From NCBI GenBank assembly GCA_907165135.1, contig OU015567.1:14570001-14634000 (forward strand): 64,000 nucleotides of DNA, read 5' to 3'. Made by a program: the position numbers and the translations under genes. The notes beneath the pieces were generated by a model that saw nothing but the letters and a program-made list of their open reading frames with translations, had not been told where the DNA came from and did no database searches. The stretch is from Oikopleura dioica (lineage: Eukaryota > Animalia > Chordata). Every line of letters starts with the position of its first letter. Within the stretch, counting starts at the first letter, position 1. Below are positions 1-61,930 of the stretch, piece by piece.

Positions 1-224
1 AAAAGGACAGAAACTCTTTTCCCTCAATCATTGAACAGCGGTTGTGCTTTCGGGCCCTCTCAAAGGAACTCGGACTAAAGGTCAAATCTATTTGGCTGGG
101 TCTGAAGTTGCGATGAGGGGCAACCCGAGGGGCGGAAGTTGTTTGCTGGTTGGGGAGAAAATTGGGTTGAGAAAATATGTCAAATAATAGCGGAAATGTT
201 ATTTAGAAGGTTTCCCGGGACAAT

Positions 225-1313
225 ATGCCACCCAAGAAGAAACAAGCGGTGAAAGAAACCCCATATGTATCACCAAAAGCCCCAACACCAGAATATACCC
301 AACCAAATGTTGGGGAAGATCAAAAAGAGGAAGAAGAAACGGAAGTGATGGAGAAGTCGGGAGACAACAAGACCCTTGAGCGAATGGAGAACGATATAGT
401 AGAACTTCACCGAAGAATGGCCCAACTCAACCGCAAGTTGACCTTGACGAGTCAGTCTGCAGATCTAGTATGTCCGGGGGAAATCATCGAAGCGTTAGCG
501 AAGGTAGAGGAGGAAACCGACAGATTCAAAGGGGAGAAAGAGGTATCGGTATACCAAGCGATTGCAGCCCAACAAGCATACACGGAATCCCTCACGTTGA
601 CTTTTGGACCCCCAGCGGGAATGTTGTACAAATTGTTGCGATTTTCCATCCAATCCGAGTTCCGACACTTGTCAAGAGTGGAGCAATCGGCGAAAATGTT
701 GTCACCAAACCATCATGTTTACAAGGAACTTCGAACAGTTTCAGCGTTGGTATGGGAGGTGATCAGCGACAGGAATCTGGCCTCGGATTGGGTGATAAGC
801 ATTCGGGAAAGCGTCCGGATCACCATGGAAAAAGGCTACAAGTTGGTGTTTTCAGAGCTCCTGGAGATGGTGGTTGGGGATGAAATGGTTTCGAGAAAAA
901 CAATGGAGATGAAAGTGCGGAGAGCAAGAAACTTGCTACAGCGTTTGTTTTCGGACGAAATGTTGGGAGTCAAACGTCTTCAAGAATGGATGGATGCAGA
1001 AAAGTCACCAAAGTTTACACGACGTCAGGCAATCGTGAAATTACGGGAGGTTTTCCCCTACCGAATGGAACTGCATGCTGGGAGCTACAAACTGTTGGGA
1101 TTGAGAGAAGCGGACAGAAGAATCGAAAATGGGGAGATCGAGAATTGGCCATCGGCATCGCCACCTGGATACTCCTCAGACGAGGAGCAATTGGAGACCG
1201 AGATGGAATTTGGGCGAAAGCGGCAGCGTTACGACGAAATGCCTGCCGGGAGAAGTTTGGATCAGATGTACGAAAGCCTCAAGATGAAAAGATCGGAAAA
1301 TTTGCGTTTCTAA
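225..1313 (+). CDS. Retroelement ORF1, putative Gag-like protein (362 aa)
   Basis: Long ORF directly upstream of RT, with a coiled-coil-like segment (LERMENDIVELHRRMAQLNRKL). No diagnostic motif, so the Gag call rests on position only. Confidence 0.55.
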   Translation: MPPKKKQAVKETPYVSPKAPTPEYTQPNVGEDQKEEEETEVMEKSGDNKTLERMENDIVELHRRMAQLNRKLTLTSQSADLVCPGEIIEALAKVEEETDRFKGEKEVSVYQAIAAQQAYTESLTLTFGPPAGMLYKLLRFSIQSEFRHLSRVEQSAKMLSPNHHVYKELRTVSALVWEVISDRNLASDWVISIRESVRITMEKGYKLVFSELLEMVVGDEMVSRKTMEMKVRRARNLLQRLFSDEMLGVKRLQEWMDAEKSPKFTRRQAIVKLREVFPYRMELHAGSYKLLGLREADRRIENGEIENWPSASPPGYSSDEEQLETEMEFGRKRQRYDEMPAGRSLDQMYESLKMKRSENLRF

Positions 1314-1431
1314 AAGATTCTGTCCCCCAACAATTCCTGTTAAAGCCTGTACTTAATCGTCAGAGACATCACTGAACAAGGGGAAATGGATTTTAGGCGA
1401 CATATTAGGAGCTCACATTGCATATGTTTAG

Positions 1432-3866
1432 ATGGGAAAATCGGAGAAAGATGTGGAAGTGGAGATGCAGCGTCGCTTGCAACAAGGAGAATTCAACCCA
1501 ACAGAACACCCGACAGTGGGCGCGAACCAGTTTGACCCAACACATCCAGGTGATCTGAATTTCAAAAGCGAGCAATGGGAGTTAGAGAGATGGTTAGAGT
1601 ACGGAGCCGTAGCGCTAGAATTATTTGAAAAGCTTAAGAAGGGAGAGGTTGAACCTAGTTGGGAGATGGTGAAGTTCCGAACAGAGTCGGAGTTTGTGGC
1701 AGGATCCTTTTCGAACCACCCCCAGATCTGGTTAATTTTGATTAACCAAATGCCACCGGAAGCGCGAGCGGAGATTTATCACTCAGTCTGGGAAGGAGTG
1801 AATTTATTTGATAACCTCCAGGAAGTTAAACTGTCAAAACCGGCAAGTTACAAGAGGGTAGAGTTTGGTACGTATTTCGAGCGGAACCCGGATAATAAAA
1901 ATCGTAGTCACCTACACCCAAAATCCAAAACGGATCGAACCTCCAAATATTACCCTAAAAACGTGTTGGTTCCGGTGTTTGCAAAGGGACCGCAGAGGGG
2001 TCAGCCGTTGAAGTTCAAAAACCCTGCATCGTTAATTAACCTTCATGAGTTTGTGGTGAAGCAGATTGTGGATTGGACTAAAAAGGGAGCGCTAGAAGTG
2101 TTGGGGAATCACATGCCGACACCGAGACTAACAAGTTCCATCATTGTGGTTCCAAAAAGCGGAGAGGAAAAATGGAGAGTCTGTTTTAACGGGGCACCAT
2201 TCAAGGAGTTGGAGAAGTTCTCCCAACCCTGCTCCATGGATGACTGTGCCACGGTTCTGCCTTTTTTGGAAAAAGGCATGTTAATGATGAAGGTAGATGA
2301 TAAATCGGGTTTCCACCACCTCCAGCTCGACCAATTTTCGCGAAATATGGCGGTTTGTGAATATGGGGGGATTAGTTTCAGATACAAAGCGGCTCCTTTT
2401 GGAATACCCAAAGTGCCAGGAATTTACCAAACGGTAAATTCAGTACCGGTGAATGCCCTGCGAAAGGCGGGCCACATGTGTTTTCTTTATTTGGATGACA
2501 GGTTGTTTTTGGTGAAGCCGGAGAGTAGAAAGCAAGAGCAAGAATGGAGACGAGGTGTTACTGCCCCAAAAGGTCCGATTATGGGTTTACTGCTCATGAC
2601 GGCAGTCGGTACATATATTAATCGGAAAAAGAGCGAATTAATCCCAACATCCAAGATTGAGTTCCTGGGTTTCGAGTTCAATACGGTGAAAGGAACGGTT
2701 AAGATTCCCCATGCAAAATGGACGGCATTTGTTGAGTTGGCTAGTGGGGTGAGAAGACGAAAAACCGTCACCTTCAAAGAACTAGAGAGATTGAGGGGAA
2801 AAATGTGCGCGTTTGCGATAGTTGCTACCAACATGCGGCTTTTCATCAGGCGCATTACGCAAGTATTGGTGGAGAATGAAGGAAAACAACATGTTAAGGT
2901 GACTGAGGAGTTGAGAGATGAGTTGAAAGTGTGGCTAGACTCTAAATATGTGAAGAAAGAAAGATCTTGGGTGAAAAAGGGCATTACTACGGTCGAGACC
3001 AGAGTGTACACCGATGCCAGCAACTATGCGGCAGGGATCTACATTGAGACAGAAGGGCTGGAGGTAAATGTACCCTGGGGCGAGGAGGACGCGATAAGTA
3101 GAGATTGCATTTTCCTGAAGGAAGCATGGGCAGTTTACCACGCCCTGGACGCATATGGTCACCTTCTGAAGGATAAGCGGGTTCATTTTCTTAATGACAA
3201 TATGTGTGTGGTGAGCTGTTTCGAACACGGGAGTCGCAAGAGCCCAGCCCTAACCCGACTTATCAGAATGATACACCAAAAAGCATGCGACCAAAATGTA
3301 GAAATGATGATGTCGTGGGTGAGTACGAAAGACCAATTGGCGGACGAGGCGTCCAGGGAGGTAGACGTGAAAGAAGCAATAGTAAGGAGAGCAGTGTTCC
3401 ACCAAATAGAGACCATCGTTGGTTTTCCAATGGAAGTGGATGGAATGGCGGCAGTAGGGAATGCGAAATGTGAAAAATACATTTCGATGAGAAGAGAACA
3501 CACGGCATGGAAACATGATTTTTCCGTGCTCACGATTTCGAGGGTAAAAACCTTTGGATTTTCCCTCCCCAAACAATTCTTAATGAAACCTACAAACATC
3601 TTGCAGAGTTTGCACAAAAGGAGAAGTGGGCGTTGTTGTTGTTGGAGTACGAGACTATATCACCAATCTGGGCAGATGTAGCAGGAAAGGAAAGTTTCAC
3701 TCGGGTGGAGTTGGGAGAACTAGAAGTACCAGTGCTGTTTCCAGCAATGGAGGAGCACCCGGAATGGGGCTACTGGAAAATACCAGAGCGAGCTAATCCG
3801 ATTCTTTTAGTGCACAAGCCGCCACAACACCCCCAACGACGAAAACGCTTGAAGAAGCTATGGTAG
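1432..3866 (+). CDS. Reverse transcriptase - RNase H - DNA N6-adenine methyltransferase-like polyprotein, frame break near 3519-3523
   Basis: RT motifs KVDDKSGFHHL, PFGIPKVPGIY and FLYLDD. RNase H motifs VYTDAS, LKEAWAV, LNDN and QLADEASR. The MT-like EVDGMA..NAKC..YIS continues in the next frame as LWIFPPQ...WALLLLEY to TAG at 3864-3866. Confidence 0.88.
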
Positions 3867-4036
3867 ATATGGAGACAATCAGGAGACAGCTCTGGAGAAT
3901 TTGGTGTGCTGAAAAGCAATATTGCGGAAATTGACAAACCACTAAAACACCCAACTATCCTCATTTTATTTCGCTGATAAGCTGGCGGAACGAGTAAAAA
4001 ACAGTAATGTTTTAGACTGATTTGGTGAAAAAAGAA

Positions 4037-4520
4037 ATGGAGGAAGTTCGGCGGATCGCGGCGCAATACTCGCGCACCCAACGACAACGAATGATTGATC
4101 TGCACAATGATGCTAATGTGGTGATTGAGAAGATGGACAGGGAGATTCGGGGCAGATGTCGGGAGACTGAGCTGATGGAATTGGCGGAAGAAGGCGTGAA
4201 AAGATTTACGAGCTTCGCAAATAAATTCTGTGCTAGCTTTCCCATGTATTTTCCCCTGTACAACGAAATGATCTGGAGTTTGCGAGAGGCCACTGCGGCA
4301 CGGCGGGTAGAATTCTCAAAATACCAAAATCTCTCCCGTTTCAACAAAGAAGTATTGAGGAGTCTGGAGATTTTTACCACCACTCATGTATCCGCCTCGA
4401 TATGTTCGATTTGGGAGTTGGAGATTTTAGGAGAGATCTAACTCGCATGAGGGAAGGCCGAACCCTAATTCCACCAACACTAGACTAAAAAGAAACCACC
4501 AAACTGCCAAACAAAAATAA
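4037..4520 (+). CDS. Retroelement ORF3, unknown helical protein; predicted intron 4388-4430
   Basis: ATG 4037 follows an acceptor AG at 4014-4015. Unspliced, the ORF ends at 4441. Removing the 43-nt GT-AG intron extends it in frame to TAA 4518-4520. Confidence 0.6.
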
Positions 4521-4555
4521 GCCGCCAAAATTGCTAACCCATCGCCTTTTTAGAC

Positions 4556-5851
4556 ATGAGTTTCGGAGAAATGGTACGGACATCGAGTTTCCACGCGAAA
4601 GCGTCAAAAACGAATGTGAAAAGAATGGAAGTTGGGGGAACCACCACCGCCAAGATCGCGCAAGAACAATACGAAACCATCATGGCGAAAAATATGGAGA
4701 ACAACCATTTTTCAACGCTGTACCGACGAATGAAGGAGATGGAGAGACGTTGCCAGGTCATGACGGAGCAGGGCCTAGAAAATCAAGACGAACTAGACAA
4801 CTTAAGAGCGCTCCGCAAGGAAAGAACTCGAATAGCTGGTATTTTGGAGAATGGGGGCAAACCGTCACGAAATGAAGAACTGGCGTACGCCAAGTCCAAG
4901 AACATCGATGAAGATATCAAAGAACTACAGCGGCAAGATCTGGCTCTTATGGTGGAGAATGAGAAGATGTTTGAGAAGGTGGAAAATGCCAAAAAATCCC
5001 TCAAAGACTATGCCCTAAACAACATGAAAACCACCTATGCATACAAACAAAATGATGAATTCTACAAGGTCGGGTCGGGAAGCTGCTTGCTACAAATGGA
5101 TCGTGAGGATGAGAGACAGGTGGGAGCGGCGTATGTGGCGTTTTTCAAAGAAGCAGACCTACGAAAGCTCACCCGAGAAGAAGTGACCCCCATTGTCAAA
5201 AGATACGCCGAGGCAATCCCTCCTTCGAACCCAGACCGACAGAAAGTCATGGATTGTTGGAATTTGTTGCGAGACCACCCAGACTGCCCACGCTTCCAGT
5301 TCTACGAGAAGGTTAAGCACACGCTTACGGATCGACATCGGGATGAATTTGTGGAGAAGTTCAACACGGTGTACGATAATGAGGAGCATCGGGCGGACCT
5401 GCAGAATAGTATGGATGAGAAAACCTGTGCCCGACAATTACTAGTCCAAAAAAGGACAACATACCACCTCTCGGACGCGCTAATGAAGGAGTACAAGGCT
5501 TACAAGGATCGAATGCCAAAAGATGAATTGGAGAAGTTGGGGATAACGGACGAGATGATCCGGACGTATGAAAATGGTCAGAAGAAGAAGAAAGAAGGGA
5601 AGAAAAATCACCAAAGGGATCGTCAACACTACAAAGGAAACCGACGACACAATAGGGGCGACCGTGATGGTAGGGATAGATATTACGACCGACGGCAAGA
5701 CCGACGAGATGGTGGGGGAAGGAGATATTATGACAAGCCGTACGACCGCCAAAGAGACTACGGGAAACCATACTGGAAGGAAGGAAAACAGGACCGAAAG
5801 GACTTCCGATCAAACCATGTTGGAAAAGGAGAAAATGGAGGAAAAAACTGA
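4556..5851 (+). CDS. Retroelement ORF4, unknown 431-aa protein with coiled coil and an R/D/Y/G-rich basic tail
   Basis: Uninterrupted ORF. The tail RHNRGDRDGRDRYYDRRQDRR suggests nucleic-acid binding. Confidence 0.7.
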   Translation: MSFGEMVRTSSFHAKASKTNVKRMEVGGTTTAKIAQEQYETIMAKNMENNHFSTLYRRMKEMERRCQVMTEQGLENQDELDNLRALRKERTRIAGILENGGKPSRNEELAYAKSKNIDEDIKELQRQDLALMVENEKMFEKVENAKKSLKDYALNNMKTTYAYKQNDEFYKVGSGSCLLQMDREDERQVGAAYVAFFKEADLRKLTREEVTPIVKRYAEAIPPSNPDRQKVMDCWNLLRDHPDCPRFQFYEKVKHTLTDRHRDEFVEKFNTVYDNEEHRADLQNSMDEKTCARQLLVQKRTTYHLSDALMKEYKAYKDRMPKDELEKLGITDEMIRTYENGQKKKKEGKKNHQRDRQHYKGNRRHNRGDRDGRDRYYDRRQDRRDGGGRRYYDKPYDRQRDYGKPYWKEGKQDRKDFRSNHVGKGENGGKN

Positions 5852-6006
5852 ACCCGACACAAAGGAAGAAACCAATTGTCTGTATACATAAAAAATCTGT
5901 GAATCTGGTGACCCAACACACTGTGCTTCCCACCACGTTATTATTGTAAAATTGGAGTACTGTAAATCTAGTGAAAACAGAATGATATCCAGCAATATTT
6001 AGATTG

Positions 6007-7140
6007 ATGGGGCGGAAGAAAAAACCAAACGCTTTCTCCAAAGACTCGGACAGGATGGATTGGATGGAGAAAAGATGGGGAACCTTCAAAAAGGAAAGGA
6101 AAAAGCCAGTCATCAACGCCAAGACGGTCAAACAATTCCTGGAAGTTGTGGACGTCCCAACACCAACACGACCAGCAGTTTATGGACAATGGGGAGGTAC
6201 CATCACCCGAGTGTTGGAGGAGGAAAGAGGAATACCGATGACAAAACAGGCGGCGATGGAGATATCCAGGTGGGCAAACACTCAGTCACGAGCATTGGCC
6301 AAGACTCAGCTGTTTGAGTCCAAATCAAGTCCCACCATGAGCCAAGAACGTTTTCTGAGAGTCTGCAAAGAATTTTGGAACAAAGAATGGAAAGACAACA
6401 CCTACAAAACGACCGCGCTGGCGGTTTATCTGGCGGGAAGTACTGGAGCGAGATTGGGGGAAGTGCTGGGACTGTGGATTGAAGATTTGGAGAAGTCGGT
6501 GGACAACGGCTGCACATTCATACGATTCCCCCTACGAGTATCGAAAACCAACGCGAACAAATCACGGCCCGAAAGCCTAATTCTCAGTGTGAGTGGAAAA
6601 GAGGAGATCCCGATACTGCGATGGATGACTGGCATCTTGAATGGACGAGAGAAAGGACTCTTGTTCCCAGGCACCACCAATGCGAAAATCAATGCTCATC
6701 TGAAAGCTCTTTACAAGAAGATGAACTGGAAGAACCCCCCAACTGGACACGGGCTCAGAGGCACGTTTGTGGTGAATAGTTTGGACGCTGGGGCGAGCAA
6801 GACAGACATTGTAAATCAATGCAGATGGCAGACGTTCCAAATGATTGACAGATACAGCAACCAGCACAGACAATGCACCACCAAAGGACCAGCACATGTT
6901 ATCGCAGAGCTGAAACAAGTGGAAGAAGGGAGACGAATCGAAGAAAGGAATAGGGAGCACAAAAAGAGATCCGAAATGCTTGAGGCATTGCTTCCAAAGA
7001 AACCGACAATCCAGTTGGCGATTCGTGCCCCAACAAAGACGGTGGCGTGTCAAACGGACCCGGAAGTGACAGAAGATAAGAAGGTCATGGAAAATGATCC
7101 GTATTACCAGCGATGGCAAAAATATTTTGAAACGCACTAA
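6007..7140 (+). CDS. Tyrosine recombinase (YR)
   Basis: Catalytic set R (TGARLGEV), K (SKTN), HxxR (GHGLRG), W (CRW) and Y (MIDRYS) in the expected order. Confidence 0.92.
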   Translation: MGRKKKPNAFSKDSDRMDWMEKRWGTFKKERKKPVINAKTVKQFLEVVDVPTPTRPAVYGQWGGTITRVLEEERGIPMTKQAAMEISRWANTQSRALAKTQLFESKSSPTMSQERFLRVCKEFWNKEWKDNTYKTTALAVYLAGSTGARLGEVLGLWIEDLEKSVDNGCTFIRFPLRVSKTNANKSRPESLILSVSGKEEIPILRWMTGILNGREKGLLFPGTTNAKINAHLKALYKKMNWKNPPTGHGLRGTFVVNSLDAGASKTDIVNQCRWQTFQMIDRYSNQHRQCTTKGPAHVIAELKQVEEGRRIEERNREHKKRSEMLEALLPKKPTIQLAIRAPTKTVACQTDPEVTEDKKVMENDPYYQRWQKYFETH

Positions 7141-7201
7141 AAAGCTGTTGGGAGATTAAAAATGTGGAGATAGGATGTTTTTTCAGGGGAATTATTTTAG
7201 A

Positions 7202-8264
7202 ATGATCACATTCCAAGTATTCGAAAATCATGAGTCGGTGTACACGTTGGGGGCCCAACTGAGAGCCGGAATGGTGATGAAAGTGGTGGGACAAGATGGG
7301 GATGTGCAGAACGCAAAAGCGAATGAACTCATGAGAGCAGCCATTCACCCAATCACCACGTCGCTCATTTCTCAAATCCTTCAGGACTGGAGAAGATGCA
7401 AGGCAGACCCGCACGTGCTGGCGGAACGGAAGTGGACCAAAGCGGTGAAGGAAGCAGCTATTACGAGATGGCTGGAGAACCCCGAATGTCTGAGCAAAGA
7501 AGAGAAGCGTTCATGGTTTGGAAGGGTGATGGAAACGGTGACAAAATCAGGAGTAGCAATCGCGATCGGAGATAGGGAGACATCGTGGGCGAAGCATGCC
7601 ATGGAGTCCACGTTCATCGAGTACGTGGAAGATGATAACGCAAATAGGGCCATCCCCGGTAAGAAGCTCCGAGAGAGACTCAAATACCTGACCCTACACA
7701 CCCATCTCTACACGAAGGCGATAAAAGAACAGACCGCGTCGGTGAGATCGATCTGGAAAGTGGTGGCGACAGCAGAGCCCTTGAAAAATAATGAAACCAT
7801 CAAATGCTTCTCCGGAACGTTCTCGGAGATCAATGATGTGGTGGCGAAAGCGCTGCCAAGAGCAGAGGCAGCAGGGAGAGTAGGGATGGCGTACTTGTAC
7901 GCAGAAGAAGTTCCACCGGCGTACAAACCCCTAGTAATCACCTACCGAGCGGGCCACTTCATGCGACTGAATGTGAGAAACAGAACGTGGACTTGGACAG
8001 CCATCGAAGCAGGTAACACTAGGCTTAACCCAGCCCGGTAATAAAGCCATCCTAGGACTAACGGGAGGCATAGAAAATTTGGTTGAAGGAGAAAGAGGAA
8101 GCCACATCCATTTCCGAAAGGCAAACGAAGTTGTGATTCTGGCAGTTGGGAGCGCTGAGGACAAAACAACAATTGAACAATGGTGGCAACAGCAAATTCA
8201 ACGTGATCCTCGACTCCTGGAAAAACCAATTATGTACCCTGCAAGCCTGTACTCGGACGAATAA
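7202..8264 (+). CDS. Retroelement ORF6, unknown ~339-aa protein; predicted intron 8013-8055
   Basis: ATG 7202 lies 1 nt after the acceptor AG at 7199-7200. A 43-nt GT-AG intron joins it in frame to the 8056-8264 segment. AATAAA follows at 8270-8275. Confidence 0.65.
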
Positions 8265-8363
8265 GTTTGAATAAATTGAAAATAAGGTGACAAAAACACT
8301 CCAAAACGCATACTTTGAGTCATGAACCAGACCAGGGATATCCAACAACGGAGTAAGGTAGTA

Positions 8364-8868
8364 GAAAAATTGTATCCAACTGTTGTATTTACGTCGATTA
8401 CTATGATAATCGACGTAATTATGAATACAATAAAATATATTTCCCAGAATAACCATCAAACCCTACAGATCCAATACGTGACCCCACTAGCCCGAGCGTG
8501 AGAACGAGTGTGGAAAGTTGGGGGAAAAAGAAGCAAAAGTTTCTAGAACGAGTGTTGTTGAGAGGGCGCCCGCGCAGTGGGGTGTCAGTTTCACTTTTAC
8601 GAAGATGACGAAAAGGTAAAAAATAGAAAAATTCCTCATTCCGGCCAGTTTAGTAGAAACTGAGCTGTAGAATTCGAGAAGTCAAGAAGGCAATTCTAAA
8701 ACCCACCCGCAAAGAAACAGGGAAAGGGAATGGTTGTAGGGCGATCGAGCAGGAGTTTCTTTGCTTCACCCAACCCCAGAAGAGCGTATAGGAGTATTTT
8801 TGCGTAGTAAGAGACGGTATCCGAAAAATTGTATCCAACTGTTGTATTTACGTCGATTACTATGATAA
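8364..8868 (+). repeat. Split direct repeats B1 (8364-8409) and B2 (8823-8868) around a putative A2 segment; 12-6-12 palindrome at 8389-8418
   Basis: Identical 46-mer gaaaaattgtatccaactgttgtatttacgtcgattactatgataa occurs twice. B1 continues into the right arm taatcgacgtaa and B2 does not. Confidence 0.85.
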
Positions 8869-9016: not shown

Positions 9017-11410
9017 TTAAAAATTGCCGGTAAATTCTGCGAGCGTGACTCGGACGGATCCATCATCTTCGTAAAGAAAGTCGATGATGAAGGTGTCCTC
9101 GTGGCAATAGTGCTGGATGATGTTGTCGTCCATGTTCACGAGAATTCCGCGTTTTTGCTTTTTATAGACCTGAAAATGAATTGAATGCTTGATAACTCGT
9201 CTCTCCAGCGGAATCTTACTCTTGTGATTTTGTTCGCATCAAACGCGTACTTTTCCGCAATCGCATTCGTCAGGCCTCTGACATTTGGCTGGCGGAGCAT
9301 TAGCGCGTCGAAAATTTCCTCGGTCGATTTTCGAACATACAGGAGTATTTTGGAAGGAGGCTCCTGTCTGGGGCATTTGATTGTTGGCTCATCAGTTTCG
9401 GAATCAGGCTGGTTCAATGACGACGGTGCTGTTTTCGGATTGAAAAAAATTAGATTCTCTTCCTTGATTTCAACAAAGAATTCGAACCCGGTCCTGATGT
9501 GGGCGTAACAGTAATTCCAGAAGAATTAGAGGGAAAATAGAGATTCCGAGAGCTCGGAGGGCGAGTTGCAGCGTTGAGGGTTTCGTTAGAGAAGGAGGCG
9601 AGTTCTGAGAGGGCGCCGAAGATTGAGGACGTGTCCGCTTCGGAAACGGACAGTGAAGAATTTCGTGTTTGGAAAAAGGGCTAAAAATAGGCTCCTTGCG
9701 TCAATAATTGTTCATACCATGGTCTCGACGGCTGAATTACTAATTTCCGGCTGAAAGTAAACCGGATTTATCGAAGTGTCATGCATCGTTCTGTAATAGA
9801 CAATGTCGTGCTTTCTGCCGGTTGACATTATTGAGCCCTTGACATCTTGCGGCTGGAGCATCGTGTATTGTCCTGATTTTTGGCGCTTGCGGAGGGCTTT
9901 GCGTTCTTCGTCGCGGATTTTACGCTCAGCGCCCTTGTCGCAGAAGACTTTAATCTGACAAGCGCCGCGGTGGATCGGCTCGTCCGGTTGGTTCTCGTCG
10001 AAGGTGTCAATTTGGATCAGCAAAGGCATTCCCTTTGCTTCGATTAAAATTCTTTTCTGTGGAAAATATCTTACCTTGATGCCCTTTTGCGCGGAAAAAT
10101 CCGTAGATAAGCAATTTACAGCAATGTAAATTTTTGCGACTGTATTGACATCCCAGACAAACGAAATCGCATTGTGAGAGAACTCGGAGATCTCTCTGAC
10201 CATGGCGGATTCTTTGTAATCAGCAATGTCGATTACCCTCTGCTTTGCAGTATGCTGCCTGAAGAAAACCTTATCAAGGCAACAATTAGATGGTTTACCT
10301 CGAGTGCCAATACTTCCAATGCTTGAGCTGTTCTTCATCTGGTTTTGTCTCTCCAAAGACGACGGAGATGATTGACTTGACTCTTTCGATCCCCATCATC
10401 AGATTCTTTTTCGAACCTTTCAGCGTGATGCAGTAAAAGTGACCTTTATTGATGTAACTCATCGTTGGTTCATCTCGTTTTTGCTTGAGACTCTTTGGAG
10501 CTTCCATCGAGTAATGGAAGTCGTCATCGGGGTTTTCGGAGTTATGAGCAGCAAGATTCGCGAATTCTTCATCTTCCTCAGCGCCAAAGTTGCAAGTGAG
10601 AGGAGATCCTTGTCGATATATTTATTGATTTAATTGACTTTGGCAAACCTTTACTGGTGTCGGAATAGGTTGAGTCCGGGGATCTCCTGCTGATGAAGGT
10701 ATTTGAATTAAAGTTCTCGATCGTAATTGCCTGGCCTGAAATAACTCCAGGTATCTTTCCGACGGAAGTGTTCGAGTCTTCATCGGGCTCGTTTTTAACG
10801 GGAATGGACTGACTCAAAGTGGAAGGCTCAGTCTTGACCAGGGTAATCGAGCGGGTGCTGCTTGAAGATGCATGAAGTTTCACACTTTTTGTTGGGCTAA
10901 AAATAATGAGAAACTTTCTTCTTTATGAAATTTATTTTCAAACCTGGAATTATTCTTATTTAGATTTGAAGCTGGTCCGAGCTTTGTGCGTTTGTCGGGC
11001 GGGACTTTATAATATTCGTAAAGAGTCGCTTTTTAGATTTTATCAAAGATTCTTCTGCAATTACTCAACAATGTCATTTTTTGCTTTGAACAAAATTTCC
11101 TAATGCCCCAGCAGTGTCCTCATCGTTGGCTGCGATAGATAAGCCCATTGAAGGGTTTTCTAAGTAGGATCTCCAAGCCTCGTCTTCTGAGGTGAATTGG
11201 CCGGGCGTCTCGTCTCTCTCATCCTCTTTGTTATCTTCAGGTGGTTCGGCGGTTTTGGACGCGTCTCCACTGAAAAATGCGTCAAGAGCGTTGCGAAATC
11301 GCGCTCAGAGTTTACCTGCTCATCGGGTGCGTCGAGCTGCTCCGGATTCACGTGCTCTGTCGTAAGTGCGCTCTGCTCGAATTCTTGCAGTTCGGGTAGA
11401 GCAGGCCGAA
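9017..11410 (-). CDS. grh: Grainyhead-like (CP2 domain) transcription factor, multi-exon; 5' end approximate
   Basis: [95 protein letters not shown] and [12 protein letters not shown]. Stop at 9017-9019. Confidence 0.93.
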
Positions 11411-42115: not shown

Positions 42116-44972
42116 CAGGGGTGGATATTTTGATATCAAACCAGTTTTTCAAAACTGTCGAATCATTTATTTCATCGTTTCAAAATTTGAAATTTCAATT
42201 GAAATTGCAGGAAAAAGCCGATGAAATGACTGAAATCTATTGAAAATGAAAAAAAAGCGTTTTCAAAAGATAAAGCTTCGTGCGGAGTTTTGAAATGAAT
42301 TTGAAACTGCAATAATTGACATTTCAATCAGTTTTTCTTGTTTAGCGACTTGAAAAGAATTTGAAAAATGTAATTGAAAAAATGAATCGTTGCAAATTTG
42401 AAGAAGGCGCAGAAGGAAAAACTCAGCGCGCCTGCCATCCCTTTTTGACTCCCGCATTTCCCAAAATCCCGTATTTTTAAAATCCTAAATTTCTGAAAAT
42501 CCCGTATTTCTCAAATCGCCAATTTAGGATTCTGCCGATTCAGGATGATGGGAAATGCGAGATTTTTTTTTCTTTTGAGTTAGTTGCTTCACCAAATTTT
42601 CATTTATTTATCATATAACTTTATTTTCTTGGCTTCTCCACCGCTAATCCCGGCTTCACCAACTTTCATCCCGGTTTCAAAAACTTCGATCCTCGCTTTA
42701 CATACGTCAATCCTGGTGGCTCAAACATCAATTCGGGCGTCACTTTCTTCAATCCTAGCTTCTCAGATGCCAGTCCCGGCTTCTCAGTTCTCTATAATTG
42801 CTTCTTGAATATCGATCATGGCTTCTCCAAGATTAGGTTGGCGTTGGTAAAACCTAGATTGAAACTAATGAAGCCGGGATTGACGTCGAAGAACCTGGGA
42901 TTGACATTAGTGAAGCTATGATTGAAGTCGGTGAAGCTAGTTTGAAAAGTCACAAATTTTGACTGAGCATGAGCACGGCTGAGCACGGAGAGCTCAAATT
43001 TTGGCCTTGAGCCTGAGCACAATTGAGCATCAGCGTGCTCAAATTTGCTGAATAGGAGCACGACTGAGCAACGGCGTGCTCAAATTTAGCTGAGCCTGAG
43101 CATGATTGAGCACCCGCCTGCTCGAATTTCGATGAGCCTGATCACGCTGAGCATGCTCAATGCTCATGCTCAGAGCATGCTCAGGCAATCTTGCCACATA
43201 AAAGAATAAATAACTCAAGTTTTCAATTAGAACCATAAATAAACTAAAAACCAAGAGAATTTAGATTTTTGAAACGATGGGTGTGGGTTGGGTTGGGGAC
43301 AAAACTGAAATTGATTATCACAGTGTTCCAAGCCTTTGTCAAGCCCCAAAAATCAAGGAACGGGGCTGAGACGGCCCACGCTCAGACTTTTCAAACCCTG
43401 GCTAGGATTGAAGAAATTATTCCAATTTTCGTCGAAAGAATGGTGAGCTGAGCGAACGGCCGCGCGGTCGACCGCTCAAAATTTTTGATTTTTCTGTAAG
43501 AAGTGTTTTGAACAATTATTTCTAATAATTTCTTTTATTATTTTCTTCATTTACTCACCAAAAACACTAAAGAAAGTGTTGACTTACCGCTCAACCGCTC
43601 ACTGATCTCAAGTTGAGCGAGCGGCTGAGCGGTCTTAAGAAATGACGGTAATGCTGAGCGAGCTGACGGGCCGCTCATTCCTTTACCTTTCGACAACAAA
43701 CACCGACGACAATGTGTCATATATGACACATCTCCTTCACTGGCCTCTAGACTCTAGAGTCTAGAGGCAATTAAAGAAACCAAAATTAGACTCTGGAGTC
43801 TGGAACAGAATTCAAGCCTCAACTGTAACCCGAACTCGAACCTAGGGTCGGCGCCGACCATCGACCAAATCGACATTGTCGGGTGTCGGGTCGGGTTCTG
43901 GTCGGACCGACCCGACCCGACATTGAGATTTGTCGTTGGTCGGTCGATGGTCGGGTTTTTGTCGGGTCTGTGGTCGGTTTTCGCTCATTCTCGGGCATGT
44001 TTTCTGACATAAATTCACTTCTGTTATTCGATAATATTTTCATATTTTAATGTCACTAGCGCCAAACCATTTAGAATTTAGGACATTTATAAAATCGAAA
44101 GTTTCATAACCCCCATCTTTCGATTTTGAAGCTTTTTCATCATTCTCATTGGTTAAAAAAAACCGACCACCGACCCGACCAAAAGGCCGACTCGAAAAAG
44201 TCTGCTCAGCTCAGTTACCTCCGAAATAGGCCAGCTCCGCTCAGCTCAGAGAACTTTTTACTCGGGTCAGCTTAGCTCAGCTCAGCAAAAATAAAGCAAA
44301 ATTTGCAACTCTGCAGATAAGGGCCCTATCTTTTTAAAAAGCATTAGCTGAGCTAAGATAGCGGAGCTGAGAGGAAAGTTTAGCTGAGCGTAGCGGAGCT
44401 GGCGAAAATTTATTTGGCCGTAGCAGAGCTGGTCAGAATTTTCTTCACTGTAGCTGAGCAAAAACTTTTTTTCCGTAGCGGAGCCGTCAGCTCCGCTATC
44501 TCCGCTACGCAAATTTGCAACTGTGGCCCCACATGTCCCAGTGTGTAGCTCAGTCTATGACGGTAATTTTGAGCGCAAGAATTCCTTGTCCCGGAAGGTC
44601 TAGGAGGTGGAAAGTTCGGGAAGGCGACCAAAAATTGGTACTTTTGAAGAAAATTTTGCTTTTTTCTATAATTTATGAGTCTCACTTCACTTTTTATACC
44701 TCTTCAACGCATTGTGTCCTCCAGTGTCCTCCAAGGCTCAGCAATTTGAAATTGATTTGAAAAATGAAAAAAGATTGAAAAATCTGTCCAGGTTTGAAAA
44801 CCTTTCGCAAAATGCAAAATGAAACAGTTGAAAATTTCAAAAAAGGCTTGGCGTCATTATCATTTGAAATAAATTTGCAATTGCGAAAATGAGTTGAAAA
44901 AAGGATTATCTTTTGAAATTTCAAATCAAAAACGGTTGAAATAATGATTTGATATCAAAATATCCACCCCTG
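42116..44972. mobile_element. Non-autonomous hAT-type element filled with nested repeats
   Basis: TIR caggggtggatattttgatatcaaa at both ends, a perfect 8-bp TSD cccggggg (42108-42115 and 44973-44980), and ttgaaa/tttcaa subterminal repeats. No transposase ORF. Confidence 0.88.
42631..42945. repeat. Degenerate 21-bp minisatellite in two opposed blocks
   Basis: Units resemble ggc ttc acc aac ttt aat ccc. About 10 are on + (42631-42840) and about 5 on - (42835-42945). Confidence 0.7.
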
Positions 44973-60985: not shown

Positions 60986-61930
60986 AGGCTTACCGGACTA
61001 AATTTCGACCCATTTTTCTAATAAAGCTGAGGGGTCATATGATGCAGTTTTAGAAAGCCCAGAAGCTGGGCTTTCATTTGGGCACCATATCAAGGGGTCT
61101 TGGTCATGCCCGCAAGGCAATTTATTGGACCTGAAGTTCCAAAATCGGCACTAGAACTCTTCTAACTATTTTTCGAAAGCGGGCCGGCCTCGAGAGCCGT
61201 CAAGACTCATATATTTAGAAAGCTCAGGCTCTGAGCTTTCAGTAGAGCCGCAGAAATCTTAGTGCAAAGCCGTCTTTGGCCACCTAGGGGCGCTAGAAGT
61301 TCATTAGTTGAAACCGGAAGTTCTGGAAAACTCGGTTTTAGAGCCCTAAACTCTTTTATTTTGTTTATAAAACATATATTTACAATAATTGAGGCTATAA
61401 AAAGCTAGGAAACCGCAGACAGACCGGATGGTCAACCAGGTGGTTGATCGCGGTTCAACTCTAGAAATCTTCTGAAACATGACAATATGGGTATTTTTCG
61501 ACGAGAAATCAAATAAAAATTGAAATGGAAGATGAATTGCGGCCGAGCCACGCAATTGACCTCCCGGTTAAGAACTCTTAATCAGAGTTTACCCGAATTT
61601 CCGGTTTCTCACCCAGCTTCTAGCACCCCCAAGTGGCCAAAAACAACTTTGCACTAAGATTTCTGGGGCTCTTCTGAAAGCTCAGAGCCTGAGCTTTCTA
61701 AATATATGAGTCTTGACGGTTCTCGAGGCCGGCCCGCCTTCGAAAAAATAGTTAGAAGAGATCTAGTGCCTATTTTGGAACCTCATGTCCCATGAATTGC
61801 CTTACGGGCATGACCTTGACCCCTTGATACGGTGCCCAAATGAAAGCCCAGCTTCTGGGCTTTCTAAAACTGTATCATGTGACCCCTCAACTAAGCTAGA
61901 AAAATGGGCTGAATTTAGTCCGGTAAGCCT
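60986..61930. mobile_element. Non-autonomous Mutator/foldback-like element with long TIRs
   Basis: Imperfect inverted arms of ~330-350 bp starting aggcttaccggactaaatt and ending aatttagtccggtaagcct. Perfect 10-bp TSD agtcatcgtt at 60976-60985 and 61931-61940. Confidence 0.9.

Follow-up and report, generated by a model that had tools for sequence, protein, structure and literature searches.

A 30-bp palindrome in the Oikopleura dioica genome lies exactly on the B1/A2 join of the split repeats of a retrotransposon, hereafter W. The join is very probably the crossover site of the element. The palindrome itself is probably the internal B1/A2 copy of the joined right (B) and left (A) ends, serving as W's recombination site, and it is about equally probable that both of its 12-bp arms are recombinase-binding sites of a lox-like core. 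From comparison with related elements we conclude that the B-side half-site and the crossover region form the putative conserved functional core, and that the perfect right arm of W is apparently lineage-specific and dispensable in the family. In W, the right arm may plausibly be a second strong binding site of its tyrosine recombinase (YR).

Structure and gene content of W

The window analysed here is the whole 64-kb stretch C5:14570001-14634000, and positions without a contig name refer to it. W, the YR retrotransposon carrying the palindrome, spans about 15.55 kb (C5:14563315-14578865, or 14563310-14578868 including ambiguous overlap bases; Table 1). A genome search with 8357-8868 returned one other match, 6.7 kb upstream of the window, where C5:14563310-14563599 equals 8402-8691 at 289 of 290 positions. 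The sole mismatch is 8406, the last spacer base, which is A in both B1 and B2 and T at the left end of W. The repeats have the layout A1...B1-A2...B2, with a unique 131-bp segment, U, between A2 and B2. Because the 285 bp shared by A1 and A2 and the 46 bp shared by B1 and B2 hold no differences beyond the boundary, the insertion is very young.

All long ORFs of W lie on the plus strand and encode 1756 (no Pfam match), 368, 749 (reverse transcriptase, RT), 141, 437, 384 (YR) and 293 amino acids. The Pfam match of the RT domain (1432-3678) exceeds the gathering score, and that of the YR ORF to PF00589 has an E value of 2e-10. All catalytic residues of the YR are present (R in TGARLGE, K180, H248-x-x-R251, W274 and Y283) and are invariant, where aligned, among nine relatives; the recombinase is apparently intact. 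Pfam found no rve-type (DDE) integrase domain in any W ORF, and no methyltransferase-like domain at E ≤0.01, a search that divergent domains could escape. PAT and DIRS1 elements carry such a methyltransferase-like domain and Ngaro elements lack it. W combines an RT, a YR in place of a DDE integrase, A1..B1-A2..B2 repeats and the absence of target duplication, all features of the DIRS order, and on these characters is classed as a DIRS-order retrotransposon with split direct repeats (PAT/Ngaro type).

There is no second copy of W in the genome, where the 512-bp end region and the YR are both single-copy. The exact YR is absent from public assemblies, a word-based protein search recovered the query alone, and a PDB sequence search gave nothing at E ≤1. 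Metagenomes held no exact match to the empty site or the palindrome. Since W is single-copy, neither a second insertion nor an empty site could be read.

Table 1. Coordinates of W and of its repeats, genes and palindrome in the window.
Feature	Position	Strand	Remarks
Part of W inside the window	1..8868	+	A1 (L005:315-599) and the 1756-aa ORF (L005:1295-6562) lie upstream of the window
RT-domain ORF, 749 aa	1432..3681	+	PF00078 RVT_1, E 3e-9
YR gene, 377 aa (384 in ORF listing)	6007..7140	+	PF00589; catalytic residues
B1, internal copy of right-end repeat	8364..8406	+	final 18 nt are left arm and spacer; 46/46 with B2 when 8407-8409 are included
Extended dyad	8383..8430		ttgtat 8383-8388 pairs with atacaa 8425-8430; additional ttatga 8419-8424 on the right
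12-6-12 palindrome, candidate core recombination site	8389..8418		arms 8389-8400 and 8407-8418, spacer 8401-8406
A2, internal copy of left-end repeat A1	8407..8691	+	285/285 with A1
U, unique 131-bp segment	8692..8822	+	no copy at the left end; similar layout in V, E6 and E5
B2, right end of W	8823..8868	+	left arm and spacer to 8865, then TAA 8866-8868

The palindrome on the repeat join

The palindrome reads ttacgtcgatta-ctatga-taatcgacgtaa, a perfect 12-6-12 arrangement with an asymmetric spacer (its reverse complement is tcatag). An earlier reading of the window, made from its sequence only, had described these perfect 12-bp arms and the asymmetric 6-bp spacer, and both hold on direct reading; none of 500 shuffles of the junction region matched the inverted-repeat score. 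Two palindromes in the 64-kb window have arms of at least 12 nt and a spacer of at most 12 nt, this one among them, against 0.1 expected. The 30-mer occurs once in the 64.3-Mb genome with up to 3 mismatches allowed, and A1 and A2, which are separated by 15 kb, each carry the 12-nt right arm.

The symmetry extends outward to ttgtat-12 nt-ctatga-12 nt-ttatga-atacaa, giving 18-nt arms, the right one of which is split by 6 nt similar to the spacer. This extended dyad is the second-best inverted repeat of the junction region in the shuffle analysis. As a single-stranded DNA hairpin, the palindrome folds at -10.7 and -11.4 kcal/mol on the two strands (z -5.8 and -6.5). A search of Rfam found no family match for it, returning sub-threshold hairpins only, the best at 27.5 bits against a threshold of 75 bits.

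Elsewhere, the window holds further perfect palindromes of 13-0-13 (43743-43768), 10-0-10 (43712-43731) and 10-12-10 (43885-43916), a 42-bp tandem repeat at 43008-43153, and four hairpins of the form gaaagcYcag-NNN-ctgRgctttc at 61053, 61218, 61676 and 61842 (region 61053-61864).

Ends of W in the host DNA

The left end, at C5:14563310, reads host/tatgT-TAATCGACGTAA, slashes here and below marking joins. With its flank it is ...cttggtttcga/tatgT/TAATCGACGTAAttatg..., that is, it begins with the right arm and continues as a copy of 8407-8691. Both integrated ends are halves of the palindrome sequence, and the break lies at the spacer/right-arm border, between 8406 and 8407. The sequence-only reading had predicted that the left end would carry the right arm and then a copy of the A side running to 8822. 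The arm, tatgT-taatcgacgtaattatg, and an A copy are found upstream as predicted, but the copy comprises 8407-8691 only and does not reach 8822. The A1..B1-A2-B2 layout proposed in that reading likewise stands in part: A1 equals A2, B1 equals B2 and the palindrome is on the B1/A2 join, but U separates A2 from B2.

At the right end, the proposal of a half-site with a short host microhomology is borne out (arm, spacer and TAA). B2 is cut after these bases, as had been described, and aacaccgc... beyond them is unrelated DNA. The terminal TAA is common to the right arm, its source being either the element or the target. The host flanks, ...cgatatgt/ and /taaaacacc, show no target duplication, and only tatg.taa is common with the junction. 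The inferred target sequence of W is ...ggtttcgatatgttaaaacaccgc..., and the empty allele is expected to read ...ggtttcgatatgt/taaaacaccgc....

In the host DNA, the right end of W lies about 270 bp past the last coding exon of a CP2/grainyhead-like transcription factor gene, whose exons fall within 9139-10395 on the minus strand (PF25416 GRHL1_C, PF04516 CP2).

A sister element in marine metagenomes

An exhaustive HMMER search identified P0002 as the nearest YR, 47% identical to that of W and encoded by a 15-kb element, hereafter V, on contigs from several marine samples (metagenome and SRA: L054, L051, L053). V has the gene order of W, with nine ORFs of 1769, 146, 232, 808 (RT), 172, 487, 385 (YR), 306 and 71 aa. 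It probably comes from another Oikopleura lineage, because its host flank, including a Laminin_B gene, is 68-81% identical to C4:3115434-3123807 of the O. dioica genome. The junction of V reads ...tgtatTTACGTCACTTA-CTACAT/taaataacc..., and its A and U segments measure 287 and 115 bp. The right flanks differ in L051 and L053 (gaaatc... and aaaaaa...), and both start directly after the CTACAT of ...ttacgtcacttaCTACAT. The left end was not located because the contigs break at the A repeat.

On another contig (L059:1100-2500, Logan SRR33541869) the order is 71-aa ORF, B, A, 5′ leader and giant ORF. This was not counted as a circle or head-to-tail tandem junction of V, as an assembly path through the 287-bp A repeat gives an equal order. 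The YR relatives P0003-P0011 come from short contigs or from samples without DNA, and their junctions were left out of the comparison.

Paralogous elements in the O. dioica genome

The YR of W has about twenty weaker matches in the genome, at 33% identity or less. We read six of the paralogous loci (E1-E6), of which E1, E3, E4, E5 and E6 gave usable families (n = 5); the E6 family has ten matches in the genome. E4, E5 and E6 show a W-like architecture over 15-18 kb, with A1 far upstream and then B1-A2. U and B2 are also seen in E5 and E6, and B1/B2 in E1 and E3; a search for B2 in E4 found none. The length of U is 131 bp in W, 115 bp in V (L051:4624-4738), about 157 bp in E6 and about 2 kb in E5. 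With U present, the joined form would carry two B-A sites in direct orientation.

The B module, roughly 45-70 nt long, is alignable across all families and detectable with a profile, among recombinases that are only about 30% identical. It ends in ..tta-CTATGA in W, E3 and E4, in ..tta-CTGTAA in E1 and E5, and in ..tta-TGATTA in E6. Left arm and spacer (consensus ..cgtc..tta-CTRTRA) are conserved across YRs only about 30-47% identical.

E2 (C3:1067568-1092567) was rejected as a comparison element, because no B module was found in it and it contains a 5.9-kb duplication. Around the YR gene of this locus (L031-L033), 5,871 bp recur with 99.97% identity at an interval of 14,434 bp, which may reflect a tandem or segmental duplication of a YR element. 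C3 is a 2.9-Mb scaffold that carries five of the nine best genomic matches to the YR; its size and repeat load are compatible with the repeat-rich Y-specific region of OKI2018_I69 (PMC8008620).

The 5′ leader of W contains, at C5:14563807 (window position -6193; L002 about 1990-2010), the sequence agtcgcCTTTACTGTAA, which is the B-end motif of the E1/E5 subgroup and not W's own. Three loose repeats, ggctcattcct...gtagaattYgtagcg, precede it, and the chance probability of the motif in the leader is about 0.01-0.02. A B-end-like motif as a general feature of 5′ leaders was rejected; W alone has one, and it is absent from the leaders of the other elements.

A fixed break point and a target preference

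With the boundary defined as the aligned end of CTATGA, CTGTAA, TGATTA or CTACAT, the same aligned base, at the spacer/right-arm border, is broken in all eight independent insertions (W, the five paralogous families and V twice). The break falls at the boundary in the four left ends that are readable (W, E4, E5 and E6) and in seven of seven right ends (W, E1, E3, E5, E6 and V twice). Where the sequence-only reading had allowed for copies ending at unrelated positions, related elements end instead at one aligned position. None of the eight insertions has a target duplication, and exact identity at the joins is 0-3 nt, with W sharing 8 nt with one mismatch.

When the 8 host bases next to each of the nine ends of the O. 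dioica elements are set against the missing half of the junction, 40 of 72 positions match, compared with 12-20 of 72 for outward-shifted controls (binomial P about 6e-6 at a match rate of 0.3). Counted by hand, the two right flanks of V match at 4/8 each. No target similarity was found farther than about 8 bp from the ends. At the place of the spacer, a hand count of host bases gives 4/6 matches to the spacer in W, 3/6 in E4, 4/6 in E5 and 3/6 in E6. As the targets resemble roughly a 16-bp junction core, they fit a sequence-reading recombinase of relaxed specificity.

The 6-nt spacer stays with the right end in all eight insertions, and host bases fill its place at the left end. Random resolution of a heteroduplex overlap would give eight of one kind with a probability of about 0.4%. 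Because the right end always keeps the spacer, this 6-nt segment may be something other than the overlap in which strands are exchanged. The options are a very short overlap lying no farther than about 3 nt from the border, biased resolution, and exchange of a single pair of strands; the last would be in keeping with a single-strand mechanism of the attC/CTX kind. Exchange at the other spacer border would be traceless, because B2 always retains the spacer.

Conservation of the dyad

We tested the geometry of W (12-nt arms and a 6-nt spacer ending at the boundary) in six relatives. Complementarity of the right arm is 6/12 in V (6 of the inner 8), 4-6/12 in E3, E4 and E5, and 4-7/12 in the relatives overall; what recurs most consistently in the symmetry is the inner tta/taa. 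Summed over the six, 32 of 72 positions are complementary; 28 of 29 slid registers give 16-27, and register -5 gives 33/72. Searches for an inverted partner of the B arm elsewhere in the relatives returned chance-level matches only.

Dyads of other sequence are present at two of the junctions. That of E1 is 8-4-8 (tactgtaa-taat-ttacagta; 6/500 shuffles) and that of E6/E7 is 11-16-11 with one mismatch (gatttttcgtc-16 nt-gaccaaaaatc; 8/500 shuffles); the E1 and E6 palindromes are both out of register with that of W. By the same shuffle analysis, E3, E4 and E5 have no junction-spanning inverted repeat.

Because the symmetric right arm is unconserved even in V, with its YR at 47% identity, a two-armed lox-like site is not a feature of the family. 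As a family feature, then, the loxP/dif-like two-arm site of the sequence-only reading does not survive the comparison: the left arm is conserved and the right arm is not. The A-side half-site of the relatives is weak or degenerate, and therefore the B-side half-site and the crossover region would be essential and the perfect dyad a lineage-specific elaboration. The W right arm pairs with the left-arm variant found in W itself, even at two positions that differ in V, as would be expected both from selection for symmetry and from a recent inverted copy; that the symmetry reaches 18 nt favours a copying origin of the right arm.

Proposed mechanism and alternative readings

In the mechanism that we propose, a joined DNA copy of W, circular or end-bridged, would carry the full B-A site, and W's own YR would recombine this copy with a look-alike genomic sequence. 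Strand exchange would take place at, or within about 3 nt of, the spacer/right-arm border, leaving left arm and spacer on the right end of the insertion and the right arm on its left end. Each arm would, in W, bind one YR monomer, as at loxP, FRT or dif.

It is unlikely, though not remote, that only the B-side half-site and the crossover region matter and that the right arm of W is a neutral, recent inverted duplication of at least 18 nt of the B end. The copy might, for instance, have formed when cDNA synthesis switched template or snapped back, and would have been passively inherited within one young lineage. Such an origin would agree with the lack of the right arm in V, E3, E4 and E5 and with an inverted copy that reaches 18 nt with a 6-nt interruption, like a copying event. 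It would also agree with W being single-copy and its repeats being identical over 331 bp (285 + 46), because of which selection on the right arm would have had little time to act. Significant dyads of other sequence nevertheless span the E1 and E6/E7 junctions, the relatives show a weak excess of complementarity in the fixed geometry, and W did integrate with this junction, breaking at the usual position. A very unlikely reading is that the palindrome does not work as duplex DNA but as a single-stranded hairpin, either as an RNA or single-stranded cDNA stem-loop guiding priming or template switching at the B/A boundary, or as a folded single-stranded YR substrate like integron attC or CTX-phage attP(+), in which one fixed exchange is resolved by replication. 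The fold is stable on either strand (-10.7 and -11.4 kcal/mol), with an extended stem bearing a 6-nt bulge, and a fixed exchange point, minimal homology and the absence of heteroduplex segregation are traits of single-strand exchange; moreover, the cDNA intermediates of DIRS-1 are single-stranded (PMC7192593). Against a hairpin, the 12-bp stem amounts to one YR-binding duplex and not two boxes around the crossover, and Rfam has no match (27.5 against 75 bits). The relatives, too, keep the left-arm sequence without a pairing partner, which argues that it is the sequence that is conserved and not the structure.

That the palindrome is a chance coincidence or an assembly artefact without relation to transposition has a negligible probability. 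A single copy is all that is seen, but no shuffle out of 500 reproduces it and 0.1 is expected per window; it sits exactly on the repeat join, both ends of W are its halves, and its right arm recurs in A1 and A2, 15 kb apart. A bolder proposal, which we rate as distinctly unlikely, is that YR and palindrome form a self-contained chordate lox-like pair that accepts pseudo-sites, or that a folded single-stranded cDNA undergoes an attC-like single fixed exchange. The latter, if true, would account for the constant retention of the spacer at the right end. We know of no evidence for single-strand recombination in eukaryotic elements, in which an attC-like mechanism is, to our knowledge, unknown.

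Comparison with known systems

Simple YR sites such as loxP (13-8-13), FRT (13-8-13) and dif (11-6-11) recombine with partner sites that need an identical spacer. The site of W, as known from its sequence, is like these in having inverted arms within 11-13 bp and an asymmetric spacer within 6-8 bp, and its break point is a spacer/arm border, where the loxP, FRT and dif enzymes cleave. It differs from them in that the target does not share the spacer (3-4/6 matches), that the spacer is always inherited by one product, and that only one arm is conserved among relatives. In behaviour, W appears closer to Tn916 and CTnDOT, with partial target similarity and tolerance of heterology. The joined ends of these elements, and the secondary att sites of phages, likewise involve a circle junction with imperfect inverted ends about 6 bp apart, heterology is tolerated, and targets are only partly similar to the junction. 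In Tn916, however, the 6-bp coupling sequence is variable, being taken from the flank at the previous host site, whereas the spacer of W is encoded by the element and copied from B1, and W, E3 and E4 all have ctatga. The DNA copy of Tn916 and CTnDOT arises by excision, that of W by reverse transcription.

The junction of retroviral 2-LTR circles is also a palindrome formed by the abutting inverted termini of a reverse-transcribed element, but retroviruses use linear DNA and a DDE integrase and duplicate the target, whereas W has a YR and no duplication. Integron attC and CTX-phage attP(+) resemble W in their palindromic DNA, fixed crossover and minimal homology, and single-stranded intermediates are known for the DIRS class; the stem of W, unlike theirs, is too short for two binding boxes.

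Among the split-direct-repeat elements, PAT, Ngaro and VIPER are like W in an internal B-A join that equals the joined ends, in having RT and YR, and in a crossover identity of 0-3 bp (TAA in W). The PAT/Ngaro class measures about 5-6 kb, whereas W has about 15.5 kb and seven ORFs, and in textbook PAT/Ngaro elements A2 abuts B2, whereas in W U lies in between. Unlike in descriptions of PAT and Ngaro, the join in W carries a perfect 12-6-12 palindrome and a conserved B-side half-site. The split-direct-repeat or DIRS1 circle-junction model goes back to Cappello 1985, Goodwin and Poulter 2004, and Poulter and Goodwin 2005, as recounted in PMC3266345, PMC4157794 and PMC7192593. In the published model, elements integrate by way of the circle junction, share about 3 bp with the target and leave it unduplicated (PMC3266345, PMC7192593), and our break-point and target data, read from aligned insertions, agree with this junction-trinucleotide model and sharpen it. 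DIRS-1 cDNA intermediates are single-stranded, and the YR specificity of DIRS-type elements was uninvestigated as of a 2020 experimental paper (PMC7192593). The open full-text literature that we searched describes no split-direct-repeat junction with a palindromic or otherwise defined YR-binding site, although an earlier mention in reviews is possible.

Discussion

The published model of how the YRs of DIRS, PAT and Ngaro elements choose and cut their targets is based on a 3-bp junction motif. The W locus combines an apparently intact YR, a 30-bp candidate site whose halves are the ends of the element, a fixed crossover, a conserved half-site and a measurable target preference. Because enzyme, candidate site and crossover come together at one locus, the question of YR specificity is directly testable with oligonucleotides and purified protein. 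If the YR acts on the duplex site, W would provide a compact recombinase of eukaryotic origin together with its site, a combination that the sequence-only reading saw as a possible genome-engineering tool. The family does not depend on perfect dyad symmetry, and this constrains any model of how these elements integrate.
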